64,000 nucleotides of DNA from assembly GCA_025594325.1 (NCBI GenBank), contig JANHCV010000011.1, forward strand, positions 744,001 to 808,000, given 5' to 3'. The notes under the pieces were generated by a model that was given only the letters and a program-made list of their open reading frames with translations, was not told where the DNA came from and did no database searches. The position numbers and the translations under genes are program-made. Position 1 is the first letter of the stretch. Every line of letters starts with the position of its first letter. This stretch comes from Blastocladiella emersonii ATCC 22665. Taxonomy: Eukaryota; Fungi; Blastocladiomycota. Positions 11,677 through 27,249 of the stretch are shown in pieces.

Positions 11677-11980
11677 GGTCGCAAGCGATGCCAGAAGGTT
11701 GACGGCGGTAGCGGATCGGATGCTGATGGGCGCTGTGTCTCTGAATCGTGTCGTACGAGTGCTGGGATTCATGTCCGGGAAGGAGGAACGACGCGGAGTC
11801 CGACGCGTGGCCGCCACGCAAGCAGCCCGCGACGGTTCCGCACCCGAGTGACCTCATCGATGTCACGTGTGGCTCTGAAACCTCGGGAAACCTCTCTTTT
11901 GAACGAGCCGCCGTGGCTGAGCCGCCTCGCGAAAGAAGCCACCCGAAATTCGCATTATTGACTGAGTGAGGGGAACATAC

Positions 11981-13051
11981 TGTCGTATCCCTTAAGGGAT
12001 ACGACATGGGCTGACCCACTGCCACTCGGGCTGACCAATTGCTTACCCCGAGCAGTTGGCAGCAGTCACTCGGGGTAACCACGTGAGACCCCGTTGCTTA
12101 CCCCGGGTGGTTAATAATATGTCGGATTCAAATGTCGGATTCCCTTAGGGAACACGACACGCGGGCGGAGGCCGAAGGCCGAAGAAGGGCGGCGGCGGGC
12201 GGGGTCACGTGGGTCACGTGCAGATGAACAGCGCGTGGACACGGCTGCGAGTCGATCTGCGAGTCGATCTGCGAGACAAGTCCGAGAGCAGATCCCTGAG
12301 CCCGTCCCTGACCAACCGCTCGGGCTGACCATTGCTTACCCCGAGCGGTCGGCGGCGGCTGGCGAGCGCAGCGAGACGAAGAGCAGCGCAGCTGCGGCTA
12401 CCCACTGACAGAGTTCCCTGGTCTGGTCCCTGAGCACAGCTGCAAGTCGATCTGTTTGGTCGCGGCAATAGGCCCTTGAAGGCTCTTGGAATAATTCCAC
12501 GAGAGGTCGGCGGTCAGTCCAAGAACGCAAGCAGCGACCCGGGTCGGCGACCACGGAGTCACTCCACGAGCCGGCCCACGACTTGGTCGGCGACTTGGTC
12601 GCGGCAATAGGCCCTTGAAGGCTCTCGGAATAATTCCACGAGAGGTCGGCGGTCAGTCCAAGAACGCAAGCAGCGACCCAGGTTGGCGACCAGCCCCTGA
12701 CGGCTCTCGATGGCCGCCCCGAACTGGACCGGGTTGGAGCTCACTGGACCGGGTTCAAAGACAACCCGGTCCATGAAATTCGCTCGGGGTAAGCCATGGA
12801 CCAGGTTGACCGGGTTGACCGGGTTGTTTTAAAGTAACAGTGTAGTGAAAAGGGGGGAGGGACCGCTCCAGTGCCACTCTTCCCCCCCTTTCAAATCCCT
12901 AAAGGTCAATCGACCCCCTCAACCCGGTCCACCCGGTCCATGGCTTACCCCGAGCGAATTTCAATTGACTTGGTCCATTGAACCCGGTCCATGGCTTACG
13001 GCGAACGATTCAAAGGGCGGGAAACCTGGTCCAGGCTGCCGTGACCCGGTC
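11981..13051 (+). repeat. Left TIR of the PLV (1,071 bp)
   Basis: Reverse complement of 26179-27249. Only three mismatches seen by eye (12966, 13022, 13027). Confidence 0.95.
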
Positions 13052-13190
13052 CATGGCTTACGGCGAGCTGTTCAAAAAGTGGGCAGGGGCCCTGGTCGGG
13101 TCCACGATGCCGTAGTGTGTCCCGTTGCTACGTCATGCCAAGTGCGTTGAATGCGTTTGTCAATTTAAACTTTGTTGGACTACTGTAACT

Positions 13191-13343
13191 ATGCGAGGCT
13201 GTATCAAAGAGATCGCCCCCCTGCCCAAGCCGCCATGCGATCACTATGATGCTCCCAGCTGGGTCCATGACAATGAGCTGCTGTGGGTCCAAGTCGTGTA
13301 CCCGTGCTGCGGGCACAAGTACACATACCGCCGGGTAGTCTGA
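13191..13343 (+). CDS. PLV small Cys/His-containing protein (50 aa), unknown function
   Basis: MRGCIKEIAPLPKPPCDHYD...YPCCGHKY; immediately preceded by TTTGTTG-N8-TAACT. Confidence 0.4.
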   Translation: MRGCIKEIAPLPKPPCDHYDAPSWVHDNELLWVQVVYPCCGHKYTYRRVV

Positions 13344-13603
13344 GAGCGACCAGTAAAGGCTTCAAGGTAGCTAACCAAGTTAACTTGAAGGATCTATTCA
13401 AAGCAGACAGTGTACACAACCTTGGCACCTGGCAGGGCCACGTCGCGGATGGCCGTGTAGTTGGCTGTCGACTGGGGGCCCGGACGGCCAGTCCAAGGGA
13501 TGCTCGTGGAAGGTGCGCGGGGCGTTGATGCAGTAGAGCCAGTATTCATTGTCCTGTGTCTTACTATGCCTTCGCAGAAAGAATTTAAAGCACATGTCGT
13601 TGC

Positions 13604-13705
13604 TTACTCTACGGCGTGGAATACTTTGCTTGTGTACCTGACAATGGCCAGGTTGGCTACAAGGATCAGGGCGTTGGTGGCAACAAGGAGCGTCTCGAGG
13701 ATCAT
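13604..13705 (-). CDS. PLV 33-aa predicted single-pass membrane peptide (absent from the ORF track)
   Basis: Manual translation MILETLLVATNALILVANLAIVRYTSKVFHAVE*; preceded by TTGTTG-N8-TAAAC-ATG. Confidence 0.5.
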   Translation of the reverse strand: MILETLLVATNALILVANLAIVRYTSKVFHAVE

Positions 13706-13736
13706 GTTTACAGTACAACAACAATTAAAGTCAACG

Positions 13737-14480
13737 TCAGATGAACGCGAGCTCGACGTAGAAGGGTTGGCCAAGAAAGTCGACAGAGCGCAGGTTCTCG
13801 TCTACCATGTCAATGTCAATACAGTCAATCTGCTGGGCCTGTCCCTGCGCGTCAAAGCGAAAGTAGTCACCCATGTGTGGTCGATGCTCGAACCAGCTGC
13901 CAAAGGGTTGCGTGACGTGGATGCTACAAAGTACGCCGTTGTCTTGTGGGTACGCGCTGTACATGTTGTCCGCGAGCCGGGTGCCAAGGTTGCGCGAGTA
14001 GACGTGAAGCAGGTTGATGGGCGAGATGTTGACCAGCGCCGACGCGTACTGGACCTTGCTGTAGCCATACGCTCCAACAAAGCCCATGTGGACGTTCAGC
14101 GACGCTGTCCCTGTTCCAATTGTAAAGTCGACCGTGTCGTTGGCCAGGCGCATCTTCTGGGTAGTCGAGTCAACCTGGACGTCCCATGTGCCCTGCCAGA
14201 GGTACGCTGAGGGCGCGTTGTTGAGCAGGCTCTTGAGCGTGGCCGTGAACGTCTCGACCGTGTAGTTGCCATCAGGGACGGTGATGGTGCCCGGGAACGT
14301 CAGCGCGCCACGGCTCTGGGTCAGGTACACTTTGTTGGCCTTGGAGTTGACCGTGTGCCAGCTGTTGCAGAGGTACGCCGAGTTGACCTTGACGCCGCGC
14401 ACGGACAGGGGTCGTGGTAGGTACAGGATGCCGTTCTTGAGGTCGCGGCTGCAGATGGTCAGCGTCTTGTACTCGGACAT
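13737..14480 (-). CDS. PLV minor capsid protein (penton, single jelly-roll)
   Basis: 247 aa with the PLV mCP pattern: N-terminal ICSRD, TITVPDGNYT and C-terminal IDIDMVDENLRSVDFLGQPFYVELAF. Lies in the capsid gene block. Confidence 0.75.
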   Translation of the reverse strand: MSEYKTLTICSRDLKNGILYLPRPLSVRGVKVNSAYLCNSWHTVNSKANKVYLTQSRGALTFPGTITVPDGNYTVETFTATLKSLLNNAPSAYLWQGTWDVQVDSTTQKMRLANDTVDFTIGTGTASLNVHMGFVGAYGYSKVQYASALVNISPINLLHVYSRNLGTRLADNMYSAYPQDNGVLCSIHVTQPFGSWFEHRPHMGDYFRFDAQGQAQQIDCIDIDMVDENLRSVDFLGQPFYVELAFI

Positions 14481-14498
14481 TTAAACAAAGACAACAAT

Positions 14499-14765
14499 TT
14501 ATTGTACAGCTGTCCCCGTGTCGTCAGCGTCTGCCTCAAAGATCTCGCTCGTTGGTCGGTTGTACCAGGTGTGAATGTCTTGGGCAAGGTCGGCGCCCTT
14601 GGTCACCATCTGCGCAATGGAGCTCACAGCGGGGTTGTGCGACCGCTCAAAGAACTTGGACACAGCCTTGACGCCTTTGAGGACGGTCGGCATGTGTTTG
14701 TTGACAAAGGACCCGACCTGGCCGAGCACATTGCTAAAGTTGGTCCAGAGGTTACGGAAGATCAT
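14499..14765 (-). CDS. PLV 88-aa protein with N-terminal amphipathic helix (candidate membrane-penetration protein)
   Basis: MIFRNLWTNFSNVLGQVGSFVNKHMPTVLKGVKAVSKFF. Sits between MCP and penton and has its own TTCTTG-N8-TAAAC motif. Confidence 0.55.
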   Translation of the reverse strand: MIFRNLWTNFSNVLGQVGSFVNKHMPTVLKGVKAVSKFFERSHNPAVSSIAQMVTKGADLAQDIHTWYNRPTSEIFEADADDTGTAVQ

Positions 14766-14806
14766 GGCGGGTTTAACTCTATGCAAGAAAAGAAAGGACA
14801 GGGCCG

Positions 14807-16027
14807 TTACTTGTAGATGTTGATCTCGCCGGTTGGCAGGAACTCGTAGACCACGTCGATGCCAATGAAGGCGTCCACGCGCTGGTTTGGGGCCACGCTT
14901 GAAGTCAGGATCACCTGCATGTCCACGGCCTGGCTCTTGCAAGACTTGTCACCGCTGACCACGGTGCGACTCGACTCGAGGTCACGGCCGACAACAAAGG
15001 TACCCTCGGCCAGCGCGTTGAACTTGTCGACTGTGAGGCCAGCGCCAATGACGTGGCCATGGAAGGCATTGGTCAGCTCAACGAACGCCTCGGACGCGTA
15101 GTCGTCACAGCGGATGGGTCGCTGAGGGAAGAGTCGGCCGGCCACGCTGAACTGGTACGATGTAATGGTCTTGGCACGAAGGAACGAGTCCTTGGCATTG
15201 TCGTTGAGCACGGCATTGTCGCGGAACGACAGCAGGATGTCTTTCTGTGAGGCCAAGCGGTCCGAGATGTTGAGCGTCGAGTTGGGCACCGAGTAGTTCA
15301 GGAAGTGGTGGTTGTAGGTCGTGCCAAAGAGCTTGAGGCCCTGCTTCTTGAAGGCCGCGTCCATGACCGCGATCTGCTGGTCGTTGAGCTTGATCAGGTC
15401 CGAGACAATGCAGACGTCCTTGACTGTGTAGCCCGGGATTGCATTGTTCTTGACCACGCAGGCGTCGCTGCCAGGTGCAAGGGTGAACTCGACGCGGATG
15501 CCGCCCGTGTACTTCATTGGGAGGTGCTTCTGGTTTGCCAGCAGGGCGGATTTGATGGGCAGCATGTACCGGTGCAGCCCGGACGAGACGGCGAACTTGT
15601 CAGCGCCGGACGCAAAGTAGCCCTGTGCCACACCAAGACACGAGTCCTTGAGGTACTGGGGGACCGTCACGTCGGCCTCGATGCGCTGACGCAGGTTGTA
15701 GTACGGGAGCTCTTCGAGTAGGGCACCGGACGCGCTGTAGATGCGGACACGGTCAATGACGCTGAAGATACCATCGCAGAAAGCAACGTTGGCGTCCGTG
15801 GTCTTGGCCGAGAACTGCAGGAAAGTACAGTGCGTGTCCATCATGTCGTCGCGCGGCGGGAGCAGGACGCTGATGCTGTTGCCAGGAGCAAACTCGGGGC
15901 CGCCCTGAGCCGTGAACTGGACGGTCTGGCGCTTGGCATAGACGGACTCCTTGGGCAGGTTGAACGACATCTCGGGAGGGAGAGTCTTGGACAGGACCTG
16001 CAAGAACTGGGCGTTGGTACTGGACAT
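14807..16027 (-). CDS. PLV major capsid protein (double jelly-roll)
   Basis: 406 aa, beta-rich, with PLV MCP-type motifs HLPMKYTGGIRVEFTLA, SYQFSVAGRLFPQRPI and TFVVGRDLE. Adjacent to the packaging ATPase. Confidence 0.85.
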   Translation of the reverse strand: MSSTNAQFLQVLSKTLPPEMSFNLPKESVYAKRQTVQFTAQGGPEFAPGNSISVLLPPRDDMMDTHCTFLQFSAKTTDANVAFCDGIFSVIDRVRIYSASGALLEELPYYNLRQRIEADVTVPQYLKDSCLGVAQGYFASGADKFAVSSGLHRYMLPIKSALLANQKHLPMKYTGGIRVEFTLAPGSDACVVKNNAIPGYTVKDVCIVSDLIKLNDQQIAVMDAAFKKQGLKLFGTTYNHHFLNYSVPNSTLNISDRLASQKDILLSFRDNAVLNDNAKDSFLRAKTITSYQFSVAGRLFPQRPIRCDDYASEAFVELTNAFHGHVIGAGLTVDKFNALAEGTFVVGRDLESSRTVVSGDKSCKSQAVDMQVILTSSVAPNQRVDAFIGIDVVYEFLPTGEINIYK

Positions 16028-16067
16028 GGTTTAGTTTAGGACTCGGCAACAAAAAAAAGTCAAGAGT

Positions 16068-16865
16068 CTACTGCTTCACGATCCACTCGCTGAAGCTGTC
16101 TACGAGCCGGTACTTGGGCGGGTTCTGGTTGTTGACGCCCAGGAAGCGTCGCTTCGTGTTGCCAGTACGCGTGTCAAAGAGCTGTTCAATGATGGCCTCA
16201 AACTCCTTGAGGTCGAACTGCGACCCAATCTCCTTGTGCAGCGTCTGGACCTCGGTCTTGTCATAGATTGGGTAGACCACGCTGTAGCTGCAGTTGATAC
16301 GCAGGGTCTTGGGCAGGGCACACCACCGCTGGACGCCAATGATGCAGCTGATCTTCAAGTGCTGCGAGTTGCACAGAAAGTTGGTCAGCGTTTGGTGGCT
16401 CAGCAGCTTGAGCCCAAGCACGTCGTCGATGATCAGCAGCTGGTCCTGGAGCGCCTTCTTGCCAGACTCTTCGAATGTCTTGGTCAGGTCCTGGCGCATC
16501 TTGAGCAGGGTCGGGATGAACTGCTCGGGGTCCGTGACGATGCAGCTTGGCTTGATCTTGAGCCAGTCCGGGTCGCGCTCCTGGGGGTCCAGCACGTTGC
16601 GCTCCTTCTTGGGCGGTCGCAGGATCGGTTGACTGGCAATGTACTTGTACTTGTCGTCGGCGTGGAACGTCGGGTTAAAGACCCAGATGTTGTCGAACTG
16701 GCCCTTGTAAAAGTGCGGGAAGCAGACCATGTTTGCGATCAGCGTCGACTTGCCCTGACCCTTGGCGCCAATGACGTTCATGGTGAACGGGTGCTTGGGG
16801 ATCGGCAGCGGCTCGCCGTCGTCGTTGCGCGTAAAGCCGTTGTCAATGGCAACAATGTCGTACAT
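16068..16865 (-). CDS. A32-like (FtsK/HerA) genome-packaging ATPase
   Basis: Walker A GAKGQGKST, Walker B LLIIDD, SQHLKISCIIGVQ sensor strand and LPKTLRIN. Confidence 0.9.
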   Translation of the reverse strand: MYDIVAIDNGFTRNDDGEPLPIPKHPFTMNVIGAKGQGKSTLIANMVCFPHFYKGQFDNIWVFNPTFHADDKYKYIASQPILRPPKKERNVLDPQERDPDWLKIKPSCIVTDPEQFIPTLLKMRQDLTKTFEESGKKALQDQLLIIDDVLGLKLLSHQTLTNFLCNSQHLKISCIIGVQRWCALPKTLRINCSYSVVYPIYDKTEVQTLHKEIGSQFDLKEFEAIIEQLFDTRTGNTKRRFLGVNNQNPPKYRLVDSFSEWIVKQ

Positions 16866-16891
16866 TTAAAGACTGCCAACAAAAAAGGGCG

Positions 16892-18607
16892 TCAGTCCCA
16901 GCCGAGGTCAAGCACAATGCCGCTGCGCCTTGGGGTCTCACGGACCTGCTTGACGGGCCGCTCAGGGATCTTCTGGTGACGCTGGATCTTGGGCGCTGTC
17001 AGCCCGCTACCCGCTGCCCGCTTGTCTGTGAACAGCTTCGCGTCGGTCGGCTTCTTGTAGCCCAGTTGCTTGAGGATCTGTTCGAGGAGCATGTCGGTCT
17101 TCTTAGAACTACTGCCAGAATTGTTTTGCGCGGCCAGCTCCCTGATCATGGCCTCAAGGCCGCTTGTGTCGGCAGGCTGGACAATGACTTGGGGTGCAGG
17201 GATCGTGTCCAGCTTGGACCCAAGGTCTTGGAGCGTCTTGGTCATGGCCTCGTTGCTCTGGGTCTGCCCTTGGATCGCGCCCTGGACGCCGCTTGCGAGC
17301 TGGTTCATGAGCACCTGCTGGTTGCTGAGCGCAGAGGACATGCCCGTGGCAATCTCAGACACAAGCGCGCGGTTGCCAGCGTCAATCTGGCGGACAAAGT
17401 CGTTGCGTTCGGCTCGGAGCGTGTCCACGATCCCAGACGCGAGGTTGGCAAATGCGTCCATGGCCAGTCCCTGAGCGGCCGCCGACTGCTCGATGAGCGC
17501 CTGGTACGCCTGGTACTGCATGACCTGGGACCCGGCAAACTGCGAGGCAATGAGCTCGAGCGCGGCCATGACGTTCGGGTCATTGTTGTACTGGACCAGG
17601 ATCTGCTGCCGCATGTCCACGTTCTGCTCGTAGTAGTTGTTCTCGTACTGGGTGATGAACTGCCGCATGTCGACGTTCTGCGTGTTCTGCTGCGTGTAGC
17701 TGTTGTACACGAACTGGTTAAACTGTTGAAAGTTCTGGACAACGTCGACCTCCATGTCGTCTGTGGTTGTCAGCGCCTGCTCGGGGTTGTAGACCTGCAA
17801 GTCCTTGGAGCCCTCGATCATGCGTGCCTCGTCCATGGCCGGGTGGACGTGACCCTCGTTGTACACGCCTTGCCGCTGTGCCACGTCCGGGCCGTAGCTT
17901 GGTGGCATGACCACGAGGTCGCGGGTGCCGTCGTCAAGCCTTGGGGGCGGGTCGTTGCCGCCGTCATTGTCATTCTGGATCAGGTACTGGCCGGGGATCA
18001 TGGCGCCGTACTTGTCAATGTCTTGACCAACATAGTCGCCGGCCTTGACCGGGTACTGCTCGGGCATGACTGGCCGGACGGGCACGGGGAGCAAGTGGTC
18101 CGGTACAGCGTCCTCGTCAATGACGTCCAGGGCTCGCGAGATCTCTTCTGCCAGCTCGTCGCGCTCCTCTTCGCTGCTGCCCCTGTTGCTGTCCGTGGCC
18201 AACTCGGGGGCCTCTGGTCTGGGGCTTGCCGCTGGTGGAGCAACTGGGACTCGAGTGACCTTGCCCGTTGCCTGGTGCTCTTCCCACGCTTTAAGCGTGT
18301 CTTGGACGTGCTCCTGGAGGTCCTTGACCTCGTACCCAGTGACGCCGTCCTGGTGCTTGAGGTAGAACAGCGAGTCGCCTCGTTTGCGGCCAAAGTCGTT
18401 GGCATAGCTCTCGGGCGTCACCTTGTAGTCAAAGGCAAGGATGTAAGGCACCCAGACGTCGAGGAGCTCTTTGGCATTGGGGAACGTGTACTCGCGGCCA
18501 TCAATGGTCGCCTTGATCTTCTGCCCTGCAAGGCGCTCAGCCGTGATGCGGCCGTTGGTTGCCTTGGTCACTCTTGCAAGTAGTTCTGGTACTGTTCTTC
18601 GGCCCAT
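16892..18607 (-). CDS. PLV 571-aa protein of unknown function with a Q/N-rich segment and helical C-terminal half
   Basis: Long open frame with codon bias like its neighbours; internal repeat QNVDMRQ x2; basic C-terminus. Confidence 0.7.
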   Translation of the reverse strand: MGRRTVPELLARVTKATNGRITAERLAGQKIKATIDGREYTFPNAKELLDVWVPYILAFDYKVTPESYANDFGRKRGDSLFYLKHQDGVTGYEVKDLQEHVQDTLKAWEEHQATGKVTRVPVAPPAASPRPEAPELATDSNRGSSEEERDELAEEISRALDVIDEDAVPDHLLPVPVRPVMPEQYPVKAGDYVGQDIDKYGAMIPGQYLIQNDNDGGNDPPPRLDDGTRDLVVMPPSYGPDVAQRQGVYNEGHVHPAMDEARMIEGSKDLQVYNPEQALTTTDDMEVDVVQNFQQFNQFVYNSYTQQNTQNVDMRQFITQYENNYYEQNVDMRQQILVQYNNDPNVMAALELIASQFAGSQVMQYQAYQALIEQSAAAQGLAMDAFANLASGIVDTLRAERNDFVRQIDAGNRALVSEIATGMSSALSNQQVLMNQLASGVQGAIQGQTQSNEAMTKTLQDLGSKLDTIPAPQVIVQPADTSGLEAMIRELAAQNNSGSSSKKTDMLLEQILKQLGYKKPTDAKLFTDKRAAGSGLTAPKIQRHQKIPERPVKQVRETPRRSGIVLDLGWD

Positions 18608-18684
18608 GATGGTTACTGTATGGACCGAAAATAAAACGTCCCCCTGTCGGTACCTTTTTCCCCGTGGCAGGTGCCTTTTGTCCC

Positions 18685-18936
18685 TCAGACGGTGCTATTT
18701 GCCCCCTGGTCCTGGCGCTTGGCGTTGAGTGCCTTGTAGATCCGGATCTTGACCCGCTCTGCCCGCGCTGCCTCGTCGTCAACGTGCGTGTACCGGTTGG
18801 CCTTGCAGTCGCGCTTCCGTAGCCACTTGGCCTTGTCCTTGTCGCTCTTGCTGTACCAGCTGCTTGGCACGGGCATGGTCCCGGCGAGGTGCTCCCGCCA
18901 CTCGTCCAGGCTCAGGTCATGGTCGCTGGAAATCAT
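18685..18936 (-). CDS. PLV small basic protein (83 aa)
   Basis: K/R-rich ORF with TTCTTG-N8-TAACC upstream, divergent from the fibre gene. Confidence 0.5.
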   Translation of the reverse strand: MISSDHDLSLDEWREHLAGTMPVPSSWYSKSDKDKAKWLRKRDCKANRYTHVDDEAARAERVKIRIYKALNAKRQDQGANSTV

Positions 18937-18956
18937 TCTGTTGCTTAAGGTTAAAC

Positions 18957-20900
18957 ATGGTCAAGAATATCTTTAACGTCTCAAGTACTGCGTCTCCGAC
19001 CGTGTCTACCACAGGGGTCCCGGACGTGTCCAAGGCCTACGTTGATGCGGCCATCAGTGCCGTGTACGCCACGGTCGGCGCACCTGTTGCTGGCCCTGGC
19101 GTGGCAGTCTCAGGGACCACTGTCTCGGCCAAGGTTGACGACCAGACCCTTGGCGTGGGCGCAGCAGGGCTCTATGTCAAGTCAGTCGGCACAGCACAGC
19201 TGCTCCCGGCCAGCGTCACAGCCGACAAGGTCGCCACGATTACAGCAGGGCAGGTCACAGGCAAGCTCGTTGATGCTCAGCTGGACACTGTGTCTGCGTC
19301 CAAGGTTGTGGGCGTACTCAGTGCGTCCAACCTCCCAGCCGTTGGGACCTCGGTTCTGGCAGATGGCTCAGTGACTGATGCCAAGGTCGCGTCCGTGTCC
19401 GGGTCCAAGCTCGTGGCAGGCACAGTTGGGACCTCGGTCCTGGCAGACGGCTCAGTGACTGATGCCAAGGTCGCGTCCGTGTCTGGGTCCAAGCTCGTGG
19501 CAGGCACAGTTGGCACGGCGGCTCTCATCGACCTGGCAGTCACAGATGCCAAGGTCGCGTCCGTGTCTGGGTCCAAGCTCGTTGCAGGGACTATTGGGAC
19601 GGGAGCCCTGGCAGACGGTGCCGTATCCAACGCCAAGGTGGCAGCTGGCATCGACGGGTCCAAGCTGGCAGCGGGCACAGTCGGCTCCCTGGTCCTGGCA
19701 GACGCGGCCGTGACCAACGCCAAGCTGGCAACTGGCATTGATGGGGCCAAGCTCAACGTTGGGTCCATTGGAACAGCCCACCTGGCAACAGGCGCGGTCA
19801 CAGACGCCAAGGTTGCGGACGTGTCAGCGGTCAAGCTCACTGGGATCCTTGACCCTGCCCGCATCGCCGACGGGACCCTGACCAACGCCAAGCTGGCATC
19901 TGGCATTGACTCGGCCAAGCTTGCAGGGACCATTGACCTGGCACGACTCCCCGACGTCTCGGCCAAGGTCACGGCCGTGAGCGCAGCCTCGGTCATTGGC
20001 ACGCTCCCCCAGTCCACCCTTGGACTTGGCGCTGCCTTTGCCTTTGCAAATACGACGGACAGTTTGACATCAAGCACTGGAGCAGTCACCATTGCTGGTG
20101 GTCTTGGAGTTGGCAAGCAACTGACTGTGCCCAATGTCCTGGTCCGGAATGCCACAAGCGCGAACCTTGTCTTTGACTCGGCTGCCAATACATTGACGTA
20201 CGTCGACTTTAAGCAGGCAGGCGTACTGCGAAGCAACCTGGCATGCACAGCGGCGGGTAACATTGAGATTGCGTCTGCGACCACGGGCAGGGTCTCCCTT
20301 GTGGCAGGTGGCGGCAATGTGGTTGTGGGCTCGGCGACGCTTGGCACAGAAAGGTTCCGCGTCAATGGCACTGGTCGCTTCACAGGGCAGCTCACCCTTG
20401 ACCTCGCTCCAGTGGCAGGCACTGATGCGGCAAACAAGGCGTACGTTGACTCGTGGTCTGGCACAACCCGGTACGTCACTCAGGCCAAGCACCGCTCTAC
20501 AAACGGAGTGACCACGGGTGGCAAGATCATTGGCGGCACAGCATCGACGGGCCTGGCCACCTTTGCGTTCCAGTCCACGGCGGGCGCGTTCACGTCTGTG
20601 ATCAATGGATGCGTCAAACCCCCTGTCAGTGGCTACTACCTCGTCCATGCAAAGGGCTACTACGCAAACGGCGCGCTCCCTGGAGCCCACACTGTGAACT
20701 TTGCGCTGTACAATATGACGGACATGATTGCAGTGTTGCTTGTCACCGGGTGCCGCGCTGAAGGCAATGTCCAGTTCCTTCAGTTCTCGAGCATTGAGTA
20801 CCTTGACGCGGCCAAGAGCTACTCTTTCATCTGGATCCCGTTGGTCGCAGTTGCCAACGACTGCCAGGTCATCATTCAAAGCCACTGGACCCTGCTCTAA
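18957..20900 (+). CDS. PLV fibre/spike-like protein with repeat shaft and a probable C1q/TNF-like head
   Basis: Start MVKNIF (ATG 18957). About 28-aa repeats GTSVLADGSVTDAKVASVSGSKLVAGTV, then STGAVTIAGGLGVGK, DAANKAYVD and C-terminal KPPVSGYYLVHAKG. Confidence 0.7.
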   Translation: MVKNIFNVSSTASPTVSTTGVPDVSKAYVDAAISAVYATVGAPVAGPGVAVSGTTVSAKVDDQTLGVGAAGLYVKSVGTAQLLPASVTADKVATITAGQVTGKLVDAQLDTVSASKVVGVLSASNLPAVGTSVLADGSVTDAKVASVSGSKLVAGTVGTSVLADGSVTDAKVASVSGSKLVAGTVGTAALIDLAVTDAKVASVSGSKLVAGTIGTGALADGAVSNAKVAAGIDGSKLAAGTVGSLVLADAAVTNAKLATGIDGAKLNVGSIGTAHLATGAVTDAKVADVSAVKLTGILDPARIADGTLTNAKLASGIDSAKLAGTIDLARLPDVSAKVTAVSAASVIGTLPQSTLGLGAAFAFANTTDSLTSSTGAVTIAGGLGVGKQLTVPNVLVRNATSANLVFDSAANTLTYVDFKQAGVLRSNLACTAAGNIEIASATTGRVSLVAGGGNVVVGSATLGTERFRVNGTGRFTGQLTLDLAPVAGTDAANKAYVDSWSGTTRYVTQAKHRSTNGVTTGGKIIGGTASTGLATFAFQSTAGAFTSVINGCVKPPVSGYYLVHAKGYYANGALPGAHTVNFALYNMTDMIAVLLVTGCRAEGNVQFLQFSSIEYLDAAKSYSFIWIPLVAVANDCQVIIQSHWTLL

Positions 20901-20926
20901 AGCCCGCGGTCCCACTTTTCTTGGAC

Positions 20927-22009
20927 TCAGACTGGGACGCGCCTGACCCGGGTCGAGGGCTCCCTTGGCGTGACTGGGGTGCGCGCAACAGGGAGCCTTG
21001 GAAGACCTGGACCTACGCGCTGCCTTGTTGGCGGGTCCTGGGTCGCTGTGACTGGCTGGACGTCGCTTCGAGGGTAGAAGCCCTTGAGGCCTTGGACCTT
21101 GTAGCTCGGATTGCTTACGCCCGACCCCTTGCGCACGACCTGGACCTGGCTCACAGTTGTCAACCAGACCGGCTTCCCCTTGGCCTCCATGGCAGTCTTG
21201 TACGGCTCGCGGACTCGGACCTGGGTCCCTACCTTCAACAACGCGCTCAGAGGGTCGCCCTCGGGCTTGCCCTTGGCAGCTTGGATCTCCTTGAGCTCTT
21301 GCTTGGCCGTTTCGCAGGGCATGTCATGGAACGCGTTGGGTGCCTTGCTTGTGGCCCTCGACTTGCTGCTGTTGATCACAGATTCAATGGTCTTGAGGTG
21401 CTTGGGCCAGTCGTTGTTGCCCGGGATGGACAGCCACGGTGTGAGCATCCGGCGGATGGTCCCGTTCATGCGTTCAACAACACCTTGACCGTATGGCACT
21501 CCTGCCTTGCCCTTGATGTGCTTGGCCTCGGCCCCGGCCTCTATGCCAAAGAACTCAGTCCCATTGTCCGTCTGGATTGTGGCAGGTGTAAGGCTGTGCT
21601 TGGCAACCACGCTGGACCATGCTTCCTGCGTCTTGTCCTTGGTCTTGATGGGTTGGAGGTAGACGCGGCGGCTCGCCAGGTCGACACACGTGAGAATGTA
21701 ACGGAAGCCCTTGTACGTACCGTTTTCGCCCATGTCAATGAGGTCGAGCTGAAAGTTGCGGCCAGGACTTGTTGAGTTGATGCTTCGAATGTCTCGGCGC
21801 TTCTGAGGTGCGCGCTTGTACTGCTGCCACACGGACTGGTCGTTGAGCCACCGCTCGAGCTGGGCGCGGTAAATGTGCTTCCCTGTATGCTCGCGGTCAA
21901 CAATGTCAAAGAGACGGCGGATCCCGACCCCAACATGGCCGCGTTTGTAGTACAAGTCTTTCAGGTACTCGGTCTGTTCAGCAGTCAAAGGTTCTTTGTG
22001 GGCATACAT
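20927..22009 (-). CDS. Retroviral-type (rve) DDE integrase of Polinton type
   Basis: FQLDLIDM (D), IQTDNGTEF (D), QGVVERMNGTIRR (E), and a C-terminal LKVGTQVRV SH3-like segment. The catalytic triad is intact. Confidence 0.92.
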   Translation of the reverse strand: MYAHKEPLTAEQTEYLKDLYYKRGHVGVGIRRLFDIVDREHTGKHIYRAQLERWLNDQSVWQQYKRAPQKRRDIRSINSTSPGRNFQLDLIDMGENGTYKGFRYILTCVDLASRRVYLQPIKTKDKTQEAWSSVVAKHSLTPATIQTDNGTEFFGIEAGAEAKHIKGKAGVPYGQGVVERMNGTIRRMLTPWLSIPGNNDWPKHLKTIESVINSSKSRATSKAPNAFHDMPCETAKQELKEIQAAKGKPEGDPLSALLKVGTQVRVREPYKTAMEAKGKPVWLTTVSQVQVVRKGSGVSNPSYKVQGLKGFYPRSDVQPVTATQDPPTRQRVGPGLPRLPVARTPVTPREPSTRVRRVPV

Positions 22010-22037
22010 TGTATTAACAAAGGCGGAGACAAAAGGA

Positions 22038-23165
22038 TTACTGAGGCGTCATGTAGTAGGTCAGCGCAACGGGGACGCTGTGACCCATCTCGTGCGCGCG
22101 TTTGGCAATAGCTTGCTGCGCAGCAAAGTTCTCACTGGTGGAGATACGGCGGATCACTGCCACGCCGCCATCCTCAAAGCCGACCGTCTTTGCAGCCCGA
22201 CTAATCGACGTACACCAGGTGCTGCTAACCCTCTTGCGGAGCGTGGTGTCCTTGAGCTCCTCGAGGGTGTAGTTGTTGAAGACAAAGTCATGACCTTCGG
22301 CGAGACGCTGGGCGAGGATACGCTTGAGAGCGGCGGCGACCTTGGGCTCACTAACTGTGTGCGAGAAGTTGTAGCCACAGCCCTCTGTCTTGACAATGAC
22401 ATCGCCGGCCAGAATCTGGGTCTCTGGGTCGTAGTACGGGTACCCAGTGGTTGGCTTCGTGGTCAGGAACGCAGGGTCGGAGCGCACCGCACTCACAACT
22501 TGGAGGTACAGACGCAGGAGCCCCGTGCCTGAGCCCTTTGCATCAACAATAGCGGCGCAAATGGCGTCACGGCTCGGGAGCGCACCAGACTCAAGTTCCT
22601 TGCGCGCGTCGCGGAAGTCGGCAGCGTCCTGCTTCTTGGCCTCTGTGTACTTGGCCCCGAGTTCGGTCCACCCGTTCCAGGTGCAGTACTTGGCCAGGGC
22701 CTTGAGCGTCTCGACCTGCAGACCCTGGACGTTCTTGGACCCCTTGATCGCGTGGTACGTGGCCACGGCCTTGGACACGGCATCGACGTCGTGGATATCC
22801 ATGCCCGACTTGGCAAATGCAAGGAGCACGCGAGTTGTCTTGGTCTTGTCCGTGTCGCTCAGCGTGGCCTGCTCCCCGTTCTTGTCCACCACAGGCGCGT
22901 TGACACATGCCTCGATGGCATCCTCGGTCAGCTCGGCAAACTTGACCTTGGGGGTGTCGACTTCCACAGGAGTGACTTGCTGATCAGCGCCGTGATCTGG
23001 GTCATGTGACTCAATGGCCTTGAGTCGCGCGTCAAAGTCCTTGAAGCGCTTGTCAATAGACCCAAATACGGGCTGGAGCTTGTCCATGACTTGCTGCACC
23101 ACGTCTGCGGCAACATGCTGAGCGAGGGCAACGGCGACCTGGGAGGCAAGAGACTCAAGCGACAT
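22038..23165 (-). CDS. Divergent tyrosine recombinase (virophage/PLV type; candidate telomere resolvase)
   Basis: Order R (AVRSD) - K (IVKT) - R (VIRR) - H (MGHS) - Y (LTYY), with His-to-Tyr spacing of 8-9 residues. The His of the HxxR motif is absent. Confidence 0.7.
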   Translation of the reverse strand: MSLESLASQVAVALAQHVAADVVQQVMDKLQPVFGSIDKRFKDFDARLKAIESHDPDHGADQQVTPVEVDTPKVKFAELTEDAIEACVNAPVVDKNGEQATLSDTDKTKTTRVLLAFAKSGMDIHDVDAVSKAVATYHAIKGSKNVQGLQVETLKALAKYCTWNGWTELGAKYTEAKKQDAADFRDARKELESGALPSRDAICAAIVDAKGSGTGLLRLYLQVVSAVRSDPAFLTTKPTTGYPYYDPETQILAGDVIVKTEGCGYNFSHTVSEPKVAAALKRILAQRLAEGHDFVFNNYTLEELKDTTLRKRVSSTWCTSISRAAKTVGFEDGGVAVIRRISTSENFAAQQAIAKRAHEMGHSVPVALTYYMTPQ

Positions 23166-23247
23166 GGTTTACTGACTGTCAACAAAAAGGCTCCATGGGC
23201 TCAAGTGCGTTTGAACACAACGTTCTTTTTTCTGGGTAGCTGGGCCT

Positions 23248-23647
23248 GGGTCAGGGTCAGGGTCAGGGTCAGGGTCAGGGTGGTGGCAAGTCATGGGCCA
23301 TGCCAAACAAGGCACCCCCCCCCCTCCGACCCTGACCTCTGACCCTGACCTCCGACCCTGACCTCCGACCCTGACCTCCGACCCTGACCTCTGACCCTGA
23401 CCTTCGACCCTGACCTTCGACCCTGACCTTCAACCCTGACCTCCGACCCTGACCTCCGACCCTGACCTCCGACCTGGCGCCCTTGACCTGACCCCCCGAC
23501 CTGGCACCCTTGACCTGACCCCCGCCTGACCCCCGCCTGACCGCCCACCTGACCCCTGCCTGACCGCCCACCTGACCCCCGCCTGACCCCCGCCTGACCG
23601 CCCACCTGACCCCCGCCTGACCCCCGCCTGACCCCCGCCTGACCCCC
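23248..23647. repeat. Intergenic array: (GGGTCA)5, then a C-run, 13-bp (CCGACCCTGACCT) units and 11-bp (CCTGACCCCCG) units
   Basis: Directly visible between the divergent recombinase and TVpol-helicase genes. Confidence 0.9.
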
Positions 23648-23775
23648 ATACCTTTTTGCAGTGACTAACTGCACACGTACCCAGACACAGCCAGCAGCAA
23701 TAGCGATAATCGCAGCGCTTCAAAAGCACGGCCCCGCCCCCGCTCCCAGACTGCGTTTTTCCGCATCAAAGTAAA

Positions 23776-26118
23776 ATGCTTTATTCTGTGCTTAACAGTA
23801 ACTACTCGGCCATGCCCCAGCTGACCAAGATCGCCAAGACCCTCGACTACACCAAGTCCATGTTCACGGACTCGCGCCAGGTCGGGCTGCGCGAGTACTA
23901 CAACAAGGACGTGCTTGACGGGCTCTGCGCGCGGTACTCGGGCATCGACGCCGAGGTCAAGAAGAAGCTCAAGGCCTACGCGGCGCTGGCCAAGGCGAGC
24001 TACGGCGACGGCAAGGAGACCGTGTACTCGTTCACCACGCGGTCGACCTCGGTCGAGAAGAAGTTTGGCCGACTCTACGCCACGTCGCCGTCGCTCCAGA
24101 GCTTCAGCAAGGACCTCATCCGCAGCCCGCTGGCCAAGGGCGTGCTCCAGGACCTTGACATGAAGGGCGCGGCGCCGTCGATCCTCCGCGGCGTCTGCCA
24201 GCACTACAACCTTGGCCACGGCGTCTTTGACCAGTACCTCGCCAACCGCACGGCCGCGCTGGCCAAGTGGGGGCTCAGGGATAAGCAGGAGTTCCTCTCG
24301 ATGCTGTTCAATGAGTTCGTCGACCGCGACGCGGTGCACCCCGAGCTCGCGGCCTTCCACCACATGCTGTACGGCTCGCTGTACAAGCTGATCGAGAAGG
24401 ACTTTCCGCACGTCGTCAAGGCGTCCAAGCCTCGCACGGACAAGACCATGAACAAGGGCTCGGTGCTCTCCAACCTGTTCCAGGCCGTCGAGTCGATCCT
24501 CCTGATGCGCGCCATTGACTTTGCCCGCGCCAACGACCTTGTGCCAAGCGTGCTTGTGTTTGACGGGTTCATGGTCAAGAAGGACGACCGCATCAACGCC
24601 GAGCTGCTCGCCAAGATGTCCGCCGACACGCTCAAGTACACGGGCTTCGAGGTGGAGTGGGACGAGAAGGAGATCACGGTGCCTGAGTCCAAGGACAAGG
24701 GCAAGCTCCCCGACTTTTGCGAGGACCCGGCCGCGTTTGTTGCCGTGCAGCTCGAGCGTGACCCGCACTACGATGACGACTGGATCGGCAAGGTCATCTC
24801 CCACTACCTCAGCCGCGAGGTGGACGAGGACAAGCAGTCGTGGAAGGAGGCCGTGATCAAGTACGTGGGCGAGTTTGTCCGCAAGGACCTGGTCGGCGAG
24901 ATGTACTTTCGCCGCACCGTGACCAACGCGTGGGACACCAATGGCGAGGACAACGTGAAGAAGGCGTGCAGCATGGGGGCCATCAAGTACGCTCCACAGG
25001 TCAAGGCGCTCATCTTTGACATGCACAAGCCGCGGTGGGGGCCGTCGCACCAGAACGGCCTTGTGGTTGACTACTTTAACGCGTTCTATGGGTTTGCGGC
25101 CACGGACCTTGGCCGCGACATTGAGCCCGAGTCGATTGCCATGTACCTCAAGTACATTCGCAACGTGGTCTGCAGCGGCAACGAGGAAGAGTACGCGTAT
25201 GTCCTCAAGTGGATCCAGTGTCTGCTCACCACGGGCAAGGCCAATGGCGTGATGCTGCTGCTGACGGGTCTCGAGGGCGTGGGCAAGGGCAAGTTCTACC
25301 ACCTTCTGGCCCAGTACATTATCGGCCGCAAGAACACGGTGTCCATCAGCAACGGGCCGACGTGGCTCAAGGGCGAGTTCAACTCGGAGATCGCCCACAA
25401 GATGCTCGTGCTGTTCGACGAGATGCCCTCCAGCAAGCCAGCCGAGCTCAAGAACGCGTTTGACAAGCTCAAGAGCATGGTCACCGAGGACAAGCTCATT
25501 GTCAACGAAAAGTACATGAAACGCAAGGAGGTCGAGAACGTCAACAACTTTATGATCGCGACCAACAACTGCGACGTGCTGCCACTCACCAAGACTGGTC
25601 GCCGCGAGTTCGTCCTCAAGATGTCCAACATCAAGTGCCAGGACGAGAACTACTTTGGCGAGCTCGACGCGTTTGTCAAGGAGCACGCCGACGAGATCTT
25701 TACCTACATCCTCCGCCTCGACCTCTCGCACCTGACGCTGTCCAAGTTCCCGCGCAACCAGGCCCGCAACAACGCCATCATGGCGGCACTGGAGCCGGTT
25801 CCCGCGCTGGCCATGGACATCATGGAGTACGGCGGCTTCCCGCTCAACCTCCTGGACCACACGCGCCAGGTCGAAGTCGTGCAGGAGCTCGAGGCAGACG
25901 CGTTCTACGAGTTTTACCGCAAGTACGCCGAGAAGCGCTTCCCTGGCCGCTCGTCCATGTCGCAGACCAAGTTCGGCGAGTACATCAAGCGCGAAGTCAA
26001 CCCGGCCAACAAGCAGGAGCTCTTCGAGGTGACGCGTCGCACCGTGAATCGCCGCAAGCTTCACATCTACAAGTACCGCGGGCCGTACACAGTTGAGCTG
26101 TCCGACGACGAGATGTAA
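23776..26118 (+). CDS. TVpol (family A polymerase-like primase) fused to a D5-like superfamily 3 helicase
   Basis: N-terminal FGRLY...LQDLDMKGAAPSIL and LVFDGFMV. C-terminal Walker A GLEGVGKG, Walker B VLFDE and motif C IATNN. A second possible start, MPQL, lies at 23812. Confidence 0.85.
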   Translation: MLYSVLNSNYSAMPQLTKIAKTLDYTKSMFTDSRQVGLREYYNKDVLDGLCARYSGIDAEVKKKLKAYAALAKASYGDGKETVYSFTTRSTSVEKKFGRLYATSPSLQSFSKDLIRSPLAKGVLQDLDMKGAAPSILRGVCQHYNLGHGVFDQYLANRTAALAKWGLRDKQEFLSMLFNEFVDRDAVHPELAAFHHMLYGSLYKLIEKDFPHVVKASKPRTDKTMNKGSVLSNLFQAVESILLMRAIDFARANDLVPSVLVFDGFMVKKDDRINAELLAKMSADTLKYTGFEVEWDEKEITVPESKDKGKLPDFCEDPAAFVAVQLERDPHYDDDWIGKVISHYLSREVDEDKQSWKEAVIKYVGEFVRKDLVGEMYFRRTVTNAWDTNGEDNVKKACSMGAIKYAPQVKALIFDMHKPRWGPSHQNGLVVDYFNAFYGFAATDLGRDIEPESIAMYLKYIRNVVCSGNEEEYAYVLKWIQCLLTTGKANGVMLLLTGLEGVGKGKFYHLLAQYIIGRKNTVSISNGPTWLKGEFNSEIAHKMLVLFDEMPSSKPAELKNAFDKLKSMVTEDKLIVNEKYMKRKEVENVNNFMIATNNCDVLPLTKTGRREFVLKMSNIKCQDENYFGELDAFVKEHADEIFTYILRLDLSHLTLSKFPRNQARNNAIMAALEPVPALAMDIMEYGGFPLNLLDHTRQVEVVQELEADAFYEFYRKYAEKRFPGRSSMSQTKFGEYIKREVNPANKQELFEVTRRTVNRRKLHIYKYRGPYTVELSDDEM

Positions 26119-26178
26119 CAAGTCCAGAGACTCCTTTGTGAATACAACTTTGTACCTTTTGTTTACTGTACTCGCAGC

Positions 26179-27249
26179 GACCGGGTCACGGCAGCCTGGA
26201 CCGGGTTGCCCGCCCTTTGAATCGTTCGCCGTAAGCCATGGACCGGGTTCAATGGACCAAGTCGATTGAAATTCGCTCGGGGTAAGCCATGGACCGGGTG
26301 GACCGGGTTGAGGGGGTCGATTGACCTTTAGGGATTTGAAAGGGGGGGAAGAGTGGCACTGGAGCGGTCCCTCCCCCCTTTTCACTACACTGTTACTTTA
26401 AAACAACCCGGTCAACCCGGTCAACCTGGTCCATGGCTTACCCCGAGCGAATTTCATGGACCGGGTTGTCTTTGAACCCGGTCCAGTGAGCTCCAACCCG
26501 GTCCAGTTCGGGGCGGCCATCGAGAGCCGTCAGGGGCTGGTCGCCAACCTGGGTCGCTGCTTGCGTTCTTGGACTGACCGCCGACCTCTCGTGGAATTAT
26601 TCCGAGAGCCTTCAAGGGCCTATTGCCGCGACCAAGTCGCCGACCAAGTCGTGGGCCGGCTCGTGGAGTGACTCCGTGGTCGCCGACCCGGGTCGCTGCT
26701 TGCGTTCTTGGACTGACCGCCGACCTCTCGTGGAATTATTCCAAGAGCCTTCAAGGGCCTATTGCCGCGACCAAACAGATCGACTTGCAGCTGTGCTCAG
26801 GGACCAGACCAGGGAACTCTGTCAGTGGGTAGCCGCAGCTGCGCTGCTCTTCGTCTCGCTGCGCTCGCCAGCCGCCGCCGACCGCTCGGGGTAAGCAATG
26901 GTCAGCCCGAGCGGTTGGTCAGGGACGGGCTCAGGGATCTGCTCTCGGACTTGTCTCGCAGATCGACTCGCAGATCGACTCGCAGCCGTGTCCACGCGCT
27001 GTTCATCTGCACGTGACCCACGTGACCCCGCCCGCCGCCGCCCTTCTTCGGCCTTCGGCCTCCGCCCGCGTGTCGTGTTCCCTAAGGGAATCCGACATTT
27101 GAATCCGACATATTATTAACCACCCGGGGTAAGCAACGGGGTCTCACGTGGTTACCCCGAGTGACTGCTGCCAACTGCTCGGGGTAAGCAATTGGTCAGC
27201 CCGAGTGGCAGTGGGTCAGCCCATGTCGTATCCCTTAAGGGATACGACA
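26179..27249 (-). repeat. Right TIR of the PLV (1,071 bp)
   Basis: Reverse complement of 11981-13051; the ORF track gives mirror-image translations in both copies. Confidence 0.95.

Follow-up and report, generated by a model that had tools for sequence, protein, structure and literature searches.

Polinton-like viruses (PLVs) of the PgVV/Gezel-14T kind have a well-described gene kit (PMC4642659; bioRxiv 10.1101/2022.07.28.501842). It includes a major capsid protein (MCP) with an NCLDV-like double jelly-roll (DJR) fold and a minor one, as well as an A32 ATPase, a tail-fibre-like protein and a large replication protein whose last part is an SF3 helicase; long terminal inverted repeats (TIRs) complete the kit. 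It has neither protease nor protein-primed family B polymerase (pPolB), and a recombinase gene adjoins the replication gene. An rve integrase was found in a single PLV by Yutin et al. 2015, and a homologous protein that fuses a polymerase to an SF3 helicase is present in virophages (PMC4642659). In zoosporic fungi, Bellas & Sommaruga 2021 reported that Allomyces macrogynus carries genes for an MCP, an ATPase and a helicase, and that a PLV is integrated mid-contig in the chytrid Spizellomyces punctatus (SP group), whose group members often carry chitinase (PMC7805220).

We analysed a 64,000-nucleotide stretch (the window) of Blastocladiella emersonii ATCC 22665. Positions 11981-27249 (15,269 bp; JANHCV010000011.1:755,981-771,249) are, on sequence evidence, very probably an integrated PLV genome, PgVV-like and with an NCLDV-type capsid, of a lineage dwelling in Blastocladiomycota. 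The gene kit and long TIRs listed above for PgVV/Gezel-14T recur here, with the recombinase label of the gene beside the replication gene (p375) unconfirmed, and the element differs by adding an rve integrase. PgVV (Phaeocystis globosa virus virophage) belongs to a haptophyte, whereas this element is fungal, multi-copy and chromosomally integrated. The preliminary description had proposed a complete, intact, integrated PLV in a probable zoosporic fungus. The MCP, the ATPase, the integrase with its target duplication, the SF3 helicase and the placement in HiFi sequence bear this out, and the host is B. emersonii. Its emphasis on the novelty of a capsid-encoding dsDNA virus of fungi was overstated: because PLV genes in Allomyces and Spizellomyces were published in 2021, the element is a good new example and not a new kind. 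We found no PLV paper mentioning B. emersonii.

Table 1. Features of the element and its borders (positions in the window).
Feature	Position	Strand	Basis or remark
Left target-site copy, CATAC, 5 bp	11976-11980	+	direct repeat flanking the element
Left TIR	11981-13051		1,071 nt, TG start
orf50, 50 aa, Cys-rich	13191-13343	+	T-run/GTAA motif upstream; intact in three siblings
orf65, 65 aa	13398-13595	-	GTAAGC motif before ATG; intact in three siblings
Candidate penton (minor capsid), 247 aa	13737-14480	-	position and conservation only
Small conserved protein, 88 aa, between MCP and candidate penton	14499-14765	-	synteny, conservation
MCP, 406 aa, double jelly-roll	14807-16027	-	AF2 model and Foldseek
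A32-like genome-packaging ATPase, 265 aa	16068-16865	-	Pfam Pox_A32, 1.4e-11, above cut-off
p571, 571 aa	16892-18607	-	positional counterparts in relatives
p83, 83 aa	18685-18936	-	gene call in NCBI annotation
Fibre-like protein, 647 aa	18957-20900	+	Pfam Phage_Tail_Tip, 7.5e-10; PHROG tail-fibre families
rve (retroviral-type, DDE) integrase, 360 aa	20927-22009	-	Pfam rve, relatives, alignment
p375, 375 aa	22038-23165	-	earlier tyrosine recombinase label unconfirmed
C-rich short tandem repeat array, units 6, 11 and 13 nt	23248-23648		between divergent p375 and replication genes
Replication protein, 780 aa	23776-26118	+	SF3 (D5/DUF5906) helicase at residues ~454-750
Right TIR	26179-27249		1,071 nt, CA end
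Right target-site copy, CATAC, 5 bp	27250-27254	+	direct repeat flanking the element

The borders of the element were well defined. Its TG...CA ends and 5-bp target-site duplication (TSD) were found as first described, and so was the length of both TIR arms; a direct count gave 3 mismatches between the arms (99.7% identity, not 100%). The terminal 26 nt form a perfect hairpin palindrome (11-bp stem, -10.8 kcal/mol, z = -7). Five copies of the 14-nt motif GGCTTACSSCGAGC lie inside the left TIR and a sixth at 13055-13068, just interior to the arm. Sibling copies have in common with this TIR no more than its outermost stretch of about 475 nt. The GC content of the element is about 0.55-0.64, versus 0.65-0.74 across much of the host flank. 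The duplication is not a matter of chance, because one of 5 bp, CTAAC, was found at a sibling copy (L012) as well.

Could the junctions be an assembly artefact, or contaminant viral DNA fused to fungal sequence? At a mean length of 10.5 kb the HiFi reads fall short of the element, and in another sibling (L011) the flanks are perfectly inverted over at least 301 nt in place of a direct TSD, which fold-back artefacts can yield. We nevertheless regard this explanation as hardly credible. The element lies mid-contig (PacBio HiFi, 1.5 Mb) with a precise duplication at its junctions, independent copies occur elsewhere between other flanks and with a TSD of another sequence, and reads need to span only the 1.07-kb TIR at each junction.

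All 12 open reading frames of the element are uninterrupted. Every frame of the preliminary list was present and intact, with the bounds of the small gene and the fibre gene corrected to those in Table 1. For the MCP, the structural check that had been proposed was run, and the AF2 model (pLDDT 94.1, pTM 0.91) consists of two beta-sandwich halves, in agreement with the major capsid label. The best Foldseek match was PBCV-1 Vp54 (E 4e-18, TM 0.62-0.70), and the Sputnik MCP (3j26_A, E 3.7e-12) scored more weakly than NCLDV-type MCPs. The top structural matches were the PBCV-1, SGIV, faustovirus and Sputnik MCPs together with many NCLDV/virophage entries, and the top match in BFVD reached E 8.7e-23. 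This model places the MCP in the NCLDV/PLV type and not with that of Sputnik. Sequence searches gave 530 MCP relatives at E<=1e-3; against named PLVs sequence similarity was undetectable, and the fold alone matched. Sputnik-type virophages (Lavidaviridae) are likewise small DJR-capsid viruses with an A32 ATPase, but the window element has no cysteine protease and its MCP is nearer the NCLDV type.

The A32-like label of the ATPase was supported by its Pfam match, and this protein also matches the PHROG terminase large subunit. Pfam and PHROG agreed as well on the fibre label; the fibre-like gene has 84-nt (28-aa) tandem repeats at 19341-19639. The candidate penton was recognised by no family or structure search. 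In all relatives examined it is the second gene downstream of the MCP, and it is 32-38% identical to metagenomic relatives and 65% to its counterpart in the Allomyces javanicus element. At its N-terminus, the 88-aa protein shares 65% identity with the product of the syntenic gene on one metagenome contig (L001). The MCP and the ATPase form the minimal virion module, joined by the candidate penton, the small conserved protein and the fibre.

Integration and replication genes were also found, although the NCBI annotation of the locus has no calls for the integrase and the replication gene. The window integrase reaches 29.0 bits against Pfam rve, just under the cut-off of 32.6, whereas the orthologue from A. 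javanicus clears it with 39.2 bits and other relatives carry precomputed PF00665. D89, D148 and E179 are invariant in five aligned relatives, which upholds the rve label. The adjacent p375 had been called a tyrosine recombinase from residue patterns. R228, K259, R339, H362 and Y371 are invariant in its paralogues and the A. javanicus positional homologue, but family and structure searches matched it neither to a tyrosine recombinase nor to anything else, and the label is unconfirmed. The replication protein matches Pfam DUF5906 (2e-18), PHROG DNA primase (4.7e-26) and PDB NrS-1 primase (5.5e-10), confirming the SF3 helicase half of the earlier TVpol-helicase label. Its N-terminal domain of about 450 aa is conserved, with A. 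macrogynus and A. javanicus homologues at 44-50% identity, and gave no match in PDB and Pfam searches; it may be a TVpol, as residue patterns had suggested.

As previously described, no element ORF gave a family match to pPolB or a maturation protease. Like Polintons/Mavericks, it is a large integrated element bounded by TIRs, and it shares with them the rve integrase, the short TSD, the DJR MCP, the penton (here a candidate) and the A32 ATPase. It differs from them in having no detected pPolB or adenain-type protease, and in its 5-bp TSD, that of Polintons being usually 6 bp.

A copy count had been called for, and clustering of the ATPase at 90% gave 15 distinct sequences at 17 loci, including the window's own, on 10 contigs. 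The family thus has at least 17 loci in B. emersonii, with members about 2% different, and "recent" is only a relative term for the insertion of the window copy. Three siblings are 97.6-97.9% identical to it across about 10.1 kb, all nine shared genes are intact in them, and dN/dS is mostly 0.13-0.45 (pooled about 0.24 against L010). Since the copies diverged under purifying selection, the lineage was recently functional. The sibling alignment excludes the replication gene and the inner TIR: similarity stops at the edge of the C-rich repeat array, and where the window copy has its replication gene, each sibling has an ORF of about 1,006 aa that is unrelated to it. The replication module has therefore been exchanged.

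Many copies with TIRs and TSDs per genome, as in cut-and-paste or self-synthesising transposons, together with the lack of any known free form, would also suit a large DNA transposon that spreads within the genome through its rve integrase, its capsid genes being relics that form no infectious particles. We consider this improbable. The MCP, candidate penton, ATPase and fibre genes are intact in all four compared copies, and relic genes would not stay so at the dN/dS observed. In addition, the MCP models at very high confidence, and close relatives lie on metagenome contigs without detectable fungal flank genes. For the preferred reading, an integrated PLV, the linear genome with its long TIRs and hairpin-capable ends would be inserted by the rve integrase, whose cuts staggered by 5 bp would create the target duplication. 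Replication may begin at the TIRs with their iterated 14-nt motifs, driven by the element's own helicase-polymerase protein. The ATPase would then package the DNA into an icosahedral shell, and the fibre could attach it to zoospores, the stage that lacks a cell wall.

Outside B. emersonii, four metagenome contigs and A. javanicus have the gene block [~90 aa]-[530-690 aa]-ATPase-MCP-[85-128 aa]-[232-289 aa]. The A. javanicus locus is syntenic with the window element in the same gene order (penton 65%, MCP 57-68%, ATPase 55% and integrase 48% identity). The insertions in Allomyces come from the same phylum, but the window copy is intact throughout and its ends are defined, whereas the examined A. 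javanicus copy is degraded: one frameshift splits its MCP, and its p571-like gene is in several pieces. The A. macrogynus locus is far more distant (MCP 21%). The S. punctatus PLV is similar in its mid-contig integration in a zoosporic fungus; the chitinase of many SP-group members was not found in the window element.

A T-run/GTAA motif stands ahead of nearly all element genes, and the host flanks lack it. The T-run lies about 20-30 nt upstream of the ATG in most of the 10 larger genes. [GT]TAA occurred within 18 nt of the start in nine of them as first scored (0.92 expected), and by eye in all 10 after one gene start was corrected. A regular expression for the bipartite motif matched seven times in the 64 kb, always within the element and six times at gene starts. 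The A. javanicus element shows the same architecture, as do metagenomic relatives of only 30-38% MCP identity. Intergenic spacers are compact (18-85 nt), except for the 610-nt repeat-filled spacer from p375 to the replication gene.

Such gene starts and spacing would suit a virophage-like PLV whose genes are transcribed not by the host nucleus but by a giant virus, of the Mycodnaviridae kind, infecting the same cell; the integrated copies would wait for the giant virus and could blunt its infection, by analogy with the endogenous mavirus-type elements of Cafeteria. The sister genus Allomyces is host to giant viruses (PMC13533422), and PgVV, the closest characterised gene set, bears the promoter motif of its helper (bioRxiv 10.1101/2022.07.28.501842). 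We hold this dependence on a helper to be possible but rather unlikely. The motif was observed in the element and its relatives, and the literature reports no giant virus of B. emersonii. The motif could equally be a compact host RNA polymerase II promoter/initiator or a translation context, and with its own integrase, replication protein and at least 17 copies the element would need no helper.

Three further ORFs, p83, orf50 and orf65, were added to the earlier list. Relatives have genes of 87-96 aa at the p83 position, and genes of 531-691 aa at the p571 position, upstream of the ATPase; p571 itself is about 35% identical to its counterpart in the A. javanicus element.

The integrated element is bounded by long terminal repeats. 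An inverted-repeat search recovered two TIR arms, which by direct count differ at 3 of 1,071 positions (99.7% identical), and the similarity collapses past 1,071 nt. The termini are TG...CA, and CATAC lies immediately outside both of them. The TIRs, TG...CA ends and 5-bp TSD claimed in the preliminary description were thus all recovered. The terminal 26 nt are perfectly palindromic and fold into an 11-bp hairpin of -10.8 kcal/mol (z = -7). Coordinates of all features are collected in the table.

Positions of the features discussed, in window coordinates except where another sequence is named
Feature	Position	Strand	Remark
Element	11981-27249; JANHCV010000011.1:755,981-771,249		15,269 bp
TIR arms	11981-13051 and 26179-27249		1,071 nt each
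CATAC	11976-11980 and 27250-27254		outside both termini
NCBI gene models (GCA_025594325.1, L002/L009)	13737-26118		the window's own locus as annotated
Small gene	14499-14765		corrected start
Fibre gene	18957-20900		corrected start
p83, orf50, orf65			three short ORFs, added
C-rich tandem-repeat array	23248-23648		one exchange boundary
Stretch failing to align with siblings	~23,263-26,774		with corresponding inner left TIR
~1,006-aa ORF of siblings	L010:814-3834	-	intact in L010; split once in L011, once in L012
Sibling copy L011	JANHCV010000011.1, ~983-1,005 kb		same contig as the window
Inverted flanks of L011	L011:1-301 and 16474-16774		
HNH_3 homing-endonuclease gene	L001:8188-8733; L004:4976-5482; L007:8792-9286		
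Direct repeat	3-172 and 3797-3967		~170 nt, 88% identity
Degenerate tandem-repeat block	5390-6100		left host flank
Inverted repeat	29161-29205 and 29456-29500		45 nt, 98% complementary
DDE_Tnp_4 transposase ORF	53917-54798	-	PIF/Harbinger-type
Ankyrin-repeat ORF	55552-56613	-	

The window MCP maps by exact match to JANHCV010000011.1 (1.50 Mb), on which the window spans 744,001-808,000 and which is part of a PacBio HiFi assembly of 21 contigs and 34.27 Mb whose genome paper makes no mention of viruses or transposons (PMC9730499). The host flanks carry ordinary eukaryotic genes (HlyIII, an APC3/TPR protein and a WD40/Utp12 protein), and the close relatives of the MCP are B. emersonii ATCC 22665 proteins only. 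Because of this contig placement, these MCP relatives and these flanking genes, a contaminant origin of the element is unlikely, and the earlier guess of a zoosporic-fungus host was right. The 64-kb window yielded no second copy or fragment of the element and no tRNA gene.

Every long ORF of the preliminary description was found again, uninterrupted. Among the names it had proposed, MCP, A32 ATPase, rve integrase, SF3 helicase and fibre were upheld, while tyrosine recombinase and TVpol gained no family or PDB match. The ATPase (265 aa) matched Pfam Pox_A32 at 1.4e-11 and 44.8 bits, above the cut-off of 22.8. The rve integrase (360 aa) scored 29.0 bits, below the Pfam cut-off of 32.6; its A. 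javanicus orthologue passes this cut-off with 39.2 bits, the metagenomic orthologues carry PF00665, and the DDE triad (D89, D148, E179) is invariant in the alignment. The fibre protein contains 28-aa repeats and matches phage tail-tip and tail-fibre families. No family match to a maturation protease or a protein-primed PolB was obtained for the 9 larger ORFs in scans of Pfam and PHROGs.

The NCBI gene models of this locus miss the integrase and the replication gene, give the fibre as a spliced 400-aa product in place of the 647-aa ORF, and merge the small gene with the penton candidate as a single product of 303 aa. Intronless viral genes are mis-modelled here by eukaryotic gene finders.

Sequence searches with the MCP against Pfam, PHROGs and PDB, using the single sequence or a profile, gave no match. 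An exhaustive profile search collected 530 MCP relatives, mostly of 400-430 aa. When seven near-identical B. emersonii sequences were used as the alignment, the AlphaFold model reached a pLDDT of only 34.8; 142 diverse relatives were needed for a model of pLDDT 94.1 and pTM 0.91, which has two beta-sandwich halves. Foldseek matched this model to PBCV-1 Vp54 (E 4e-18 to 1e-15, TM 0.62-0.70), and also to the MCPs of SGIV, faustovirus and melbournevirus, to vaccinia D13 and to Sputnik (3.7e-12). The BFVD matches were nearly all capsid proteins (top E 8.7e-23, TMq 0.77). Since both the model and its Foldseek and BFVD matches agree with a capsid protein, the double jelly-roll fold, which the preliminary description had named as a point on which its reading could fail, was confirmed. 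The penton candidate (247 aa) lies two genes downstream of the MCP, a position held in all relatives by a protein of 232-289 aa. It shares 32-38% identity with the metagenomic relatives and 65% with A. javanicus, and its profile had no match in PDB.

PLVs are defined by a double jelly-roll MCP, a single jelly-roll penton near the MCP, an A32/FtsK-type ATPase, the lack of a protease or protein-primed PolB, and genomes of roughly 15-30 kb in which TIRs are frequent (Yutin et al. 2015, PMC4642659). The element shares with them the MCP fold, the A32-type ATPase and the lack, by sequence search, of protease and pPolB, and at 15,269 bp with 1,071-nt TIRs it falls inside the size range. Judged from its genes, its kit appears to match that of PLVs, PgVV in particular, with an rve integrase in addition. 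This integrase is shared with Polintons/Mavericks, but the protein assigned to replication is a fusion with an SF3 helicase, PolB had no match anywhere, and a Polinton identity was rejected because sequence searches found neither pPolB nor a protease. Compared with virophages (Lavidaviridae/Maveriviricetes), the MCP is closest to the NCLDV type, with Sputnik a weaker match, and no cysteine protease was found; a Sputnik-type virophage was rejected because the MCP is of the wrong type and no protease was detected. A giant-virus fragment was also rejected, since the element forms a 15-kb unit that has TIRs and a TSD of its own.

Until recently, hardly any DNA viruses of fungi with capsid genes were known. 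Their novelty was overstated in the preliminary description, as PLV genes in fungi were published in 2021: an integrated PLV in Spizellomyces punctatus and MCP, ATPase and helicase genes in Allomyces macrogynus (Bellas and Sommaruga 2021, PMC7805220). A32 ATPases have also been reported in many chytrid genomes (2026 preprint), and we found no literature linking Blastocladiella to such an element. In view of these earlier reports, the element is a new, unusually well-preserved example of an already known kind; what it adds is a family of copies, a signal of selection, an exchanged module and a motif common to its genes, all described below.

The nearest MCPs lie on four metagenome contigs at 30-38% identity. 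All four show the gene order [~90 aa]-[530-690 aa]-ATPase-MCP-[85-128 aa]-[232-289 aa]; three of them carry an rve integrase, and two show detectable similarity to the replication protein of the window. A scan of IMG/VR with the ATPase alignment added only two distant loci (21-24% identity). The same order is found in an A. javanicus locus (JADHYU010000147.1), with 65% identity for the penton, 71% for the small protein, 57-68% for the MCP, 55% for the ATPase, 48% for the integrase and 46% for the replication protein. The A. javanicus element is degraded: one frameshift splits its MCP, and its p571-like gene is in several pieces. Its GC content is 46%, against 61% in the fungal flank, and its intact genes retain the T-run/GTAA arrangement before their start codons. 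The A. macrogynus locus is more distant from the window than that of A. javanicus. The synteny in A. javanicus shows that this lineage is common to at least two genera of Blastocladiomycota. The metagenome contigs and the Allomyces loci, all of them truncated, yielded no TIRs. An HNH_3 (AP2-associated) homing-endonuclease gene occurs in the relatives L001 (a metagenome contig) and L004 and in the A. macrogynus locus L007, and is absent from the window element; L004 also carries a D12-class DNA methyltransferase.

Many copies of the element exist in B. emersonii. The ATPase cluster at 90% identity contains 15 distinct sequences from 17 loci, including that of the window, on 10 contigs, and the MCP cluster has 26 members, with more divergent clusters at 84-86% identity. 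Three full copies (L010, L011 and L012) were used for the comparison of siblings. Between p375 and a point past the penton candidate, some 10.1 kb, they are 97.6-97.9% identical to the window element, and all 9 shared genes are intact in each. Pairwise dN/dS was mostly 0.13-0.45 (MCP 0.13-0.42, fibre 0.13-0.21, ATPase 0.18-0.38). The divergence among copies has therefore built up while the proteins were in use, a sequence pattern more in line with a functioning virus or element that integrated repeatedly than with decay following a single insertion. L012 (16,730 bp) has 936-nt TIRs and its own 5-bp TSD, CTAAC. L011 has perfect 832-nt TIRs and no direct TSD, and its flanks form a perfect inverted repeat of at least 301 nt; a longer TIR, insertion into a palindrome, conversion past the TIR and a fold-back assembly artefact are all possible origins.

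The replication protein (780 aa) consists of two parts. Its C-terminal half is a DUF5906/D5-type SF3 helicase (Pfam DUF5906 2e-18), and the protein also matched a PHROG DNA primase at 4.7e-26 and the NrS-1 primase (PDB 6k9c) at 5.5e-10. The N-terminal 450 aa are 44-50% identical in Allomyces and are conserved in two metagenome contigs too, with R99, Y101, D128, R158, K170, E239 and D263-G264 invariant. This domain had no match in Pfam, PHROGs or PDB, either as a single sequence or as a profile; the analogy with PgVV and Sputnik (PMC4642659) makes TVpol a plausible label for it.

Alignment of the siblings with the window element fails over the replication gene region and the corresponding inner left TIR. 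Where the window element has its 780-aa helicase fusion, the siblings have an ORF of about 1,006 aa, which has no family or PDB match and no detectable similarity to the replication protein of the window; the sole hint is a faint precomputed Herpes_ori_bp match in the annotated product of L012. One boundary of the exchange is the C-rich tandem-repeat array and the other lies within the TIR. All copies share no more than about the outer 475 nt of the TIR, so the inner TIR moves with the replication gene. These results indicate that the replication module has been exchanged between siblings that are 98% identical, and the replication protein of the window is of the Allomyces type. As a natural case, the exchange cleanly illustrates the modular evolution that has been suggested for this virus supergroup.

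The protein p375 (375 aa), called a tyrosine recombinase in the preliminary description, has homologues in B. emersonii alone. With its paralogues it gave no match in Pfam even at E<=10, and p375 gave none in PDB (profiles), phages (tblastn) or IMG/VR. The A. javanicus element has a 287-aa ORF at the same position, whose alignment to p375 is weak (hhalign E 0.0048, probability 7%). R228, K259, R339, H362 and Y371 are invariant in all six B. emersonii sequences compared, namely the window protein and five paralogues, and in this positional homologue, which has 31% identity and weak homology. This R..K..R..H..Y series is in keeping with the catalytic pattern of tyrosine recombinases; as a residue pattern it is suggestive only, and p375 is kept here as a candidate.

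Nearly all genes of the element are preceded by a common motif. Intergenic spacers are 18-85 nt long, except for a repeat-filled spacer of 610 nt from p375 to the replication gene. A T-run (often TTTTTGTTG) lies about 20-30 nt before the ATG in most of the 10 larger genes. [GT]TAA(A/C) within 18 nt of the ATG was scored for nine of the ten (one start was mis-set), and for all ten by eye with the corrected starts. Random ATGs in the element had the [GT]TAA feature at a mean of 0.92, and none of 2,000 samples reached 9. An ATG-anchored bipartite regular expression matched the 64-kb window at 7 places; every one lay within the element, 6 of them at gene starts. The motif also precedes orf50 and orf65, and the same arrangement is found before genes of the A. 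javanicus element and the metagenomic relatives. An iterated 14-nt TIR motif, GGCTTACSSCGAGC, has a similar GTAAGCC core in reverse orientation; 11 occurrences were counted in the element, while the expectation for the whole window is 0.19. We read the upstream T-run/GTAA as the element's own putative promoter or initiator signal.

A rival, virophage-like reading treats this motif differently. Here the endogenous PLV family would form a fungal virophage system, its T-run/GTAA promoters would be read by Mycodnaviridae-type giant viruses, the integrated copies would serve as an inducible heritable antiviral defence, and elements residing together would exchange their replication modules. The conserved promoter-like motif, the precedent of helper-promoter use by PgVV (bioRxiv 10.1101/2022.07.28.501842) and the giant viruses in Allomyces (PMC13533422) speak for it, but the literature reports no giant virus for Blastocladiella, and we consider this system improbable as a whole. 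If true, this would give the fungal kingdom its first virus-virophage-host triad. Since giant viruses have recently been described in the sister genus Allomyces and syntenic elements are present there, the question of a fungal virophage partner is concrete and can be tested with existing data.

For the element as an integrated PLV, the following steps may be proposed. The rve integrase would insert the linear genome by making staggered cuts 5 bp apart. Initiation of replication by the putative helicase-polymerase protein could make use of the TIR iterons and the terminal hairpin, and the fibre would mediate attachment, most plausibly to wall-less zoospores. If p375 is truly recombinase-like, it might offer another way for integration or resolution to occur. 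B. emersonii has long served as a laboratory model and has a near-complete HiFi genome, and an intact multi-copy PLV family with defined ends and signs of selection on capsid genes makes it a well-defined system for the study of integration, transcription and module exchange in fungi.

The host sequence of the window contains several other repeats. A direct repeat and a degenerate tandem-repeat block, the latter with self-similarity of 71-79% at many offsets, were observed left of the element. About 2 kb to its right, an inverted repeat with arms 250 nt apart (29161-29500) could be a small MITE-like insertion. The DDE_Tnp_4 and ankyrin-repeat ORFs sit in a lower-GC stretch at about 50-58 kb, which is probably another mobile element, not related to the PLV.
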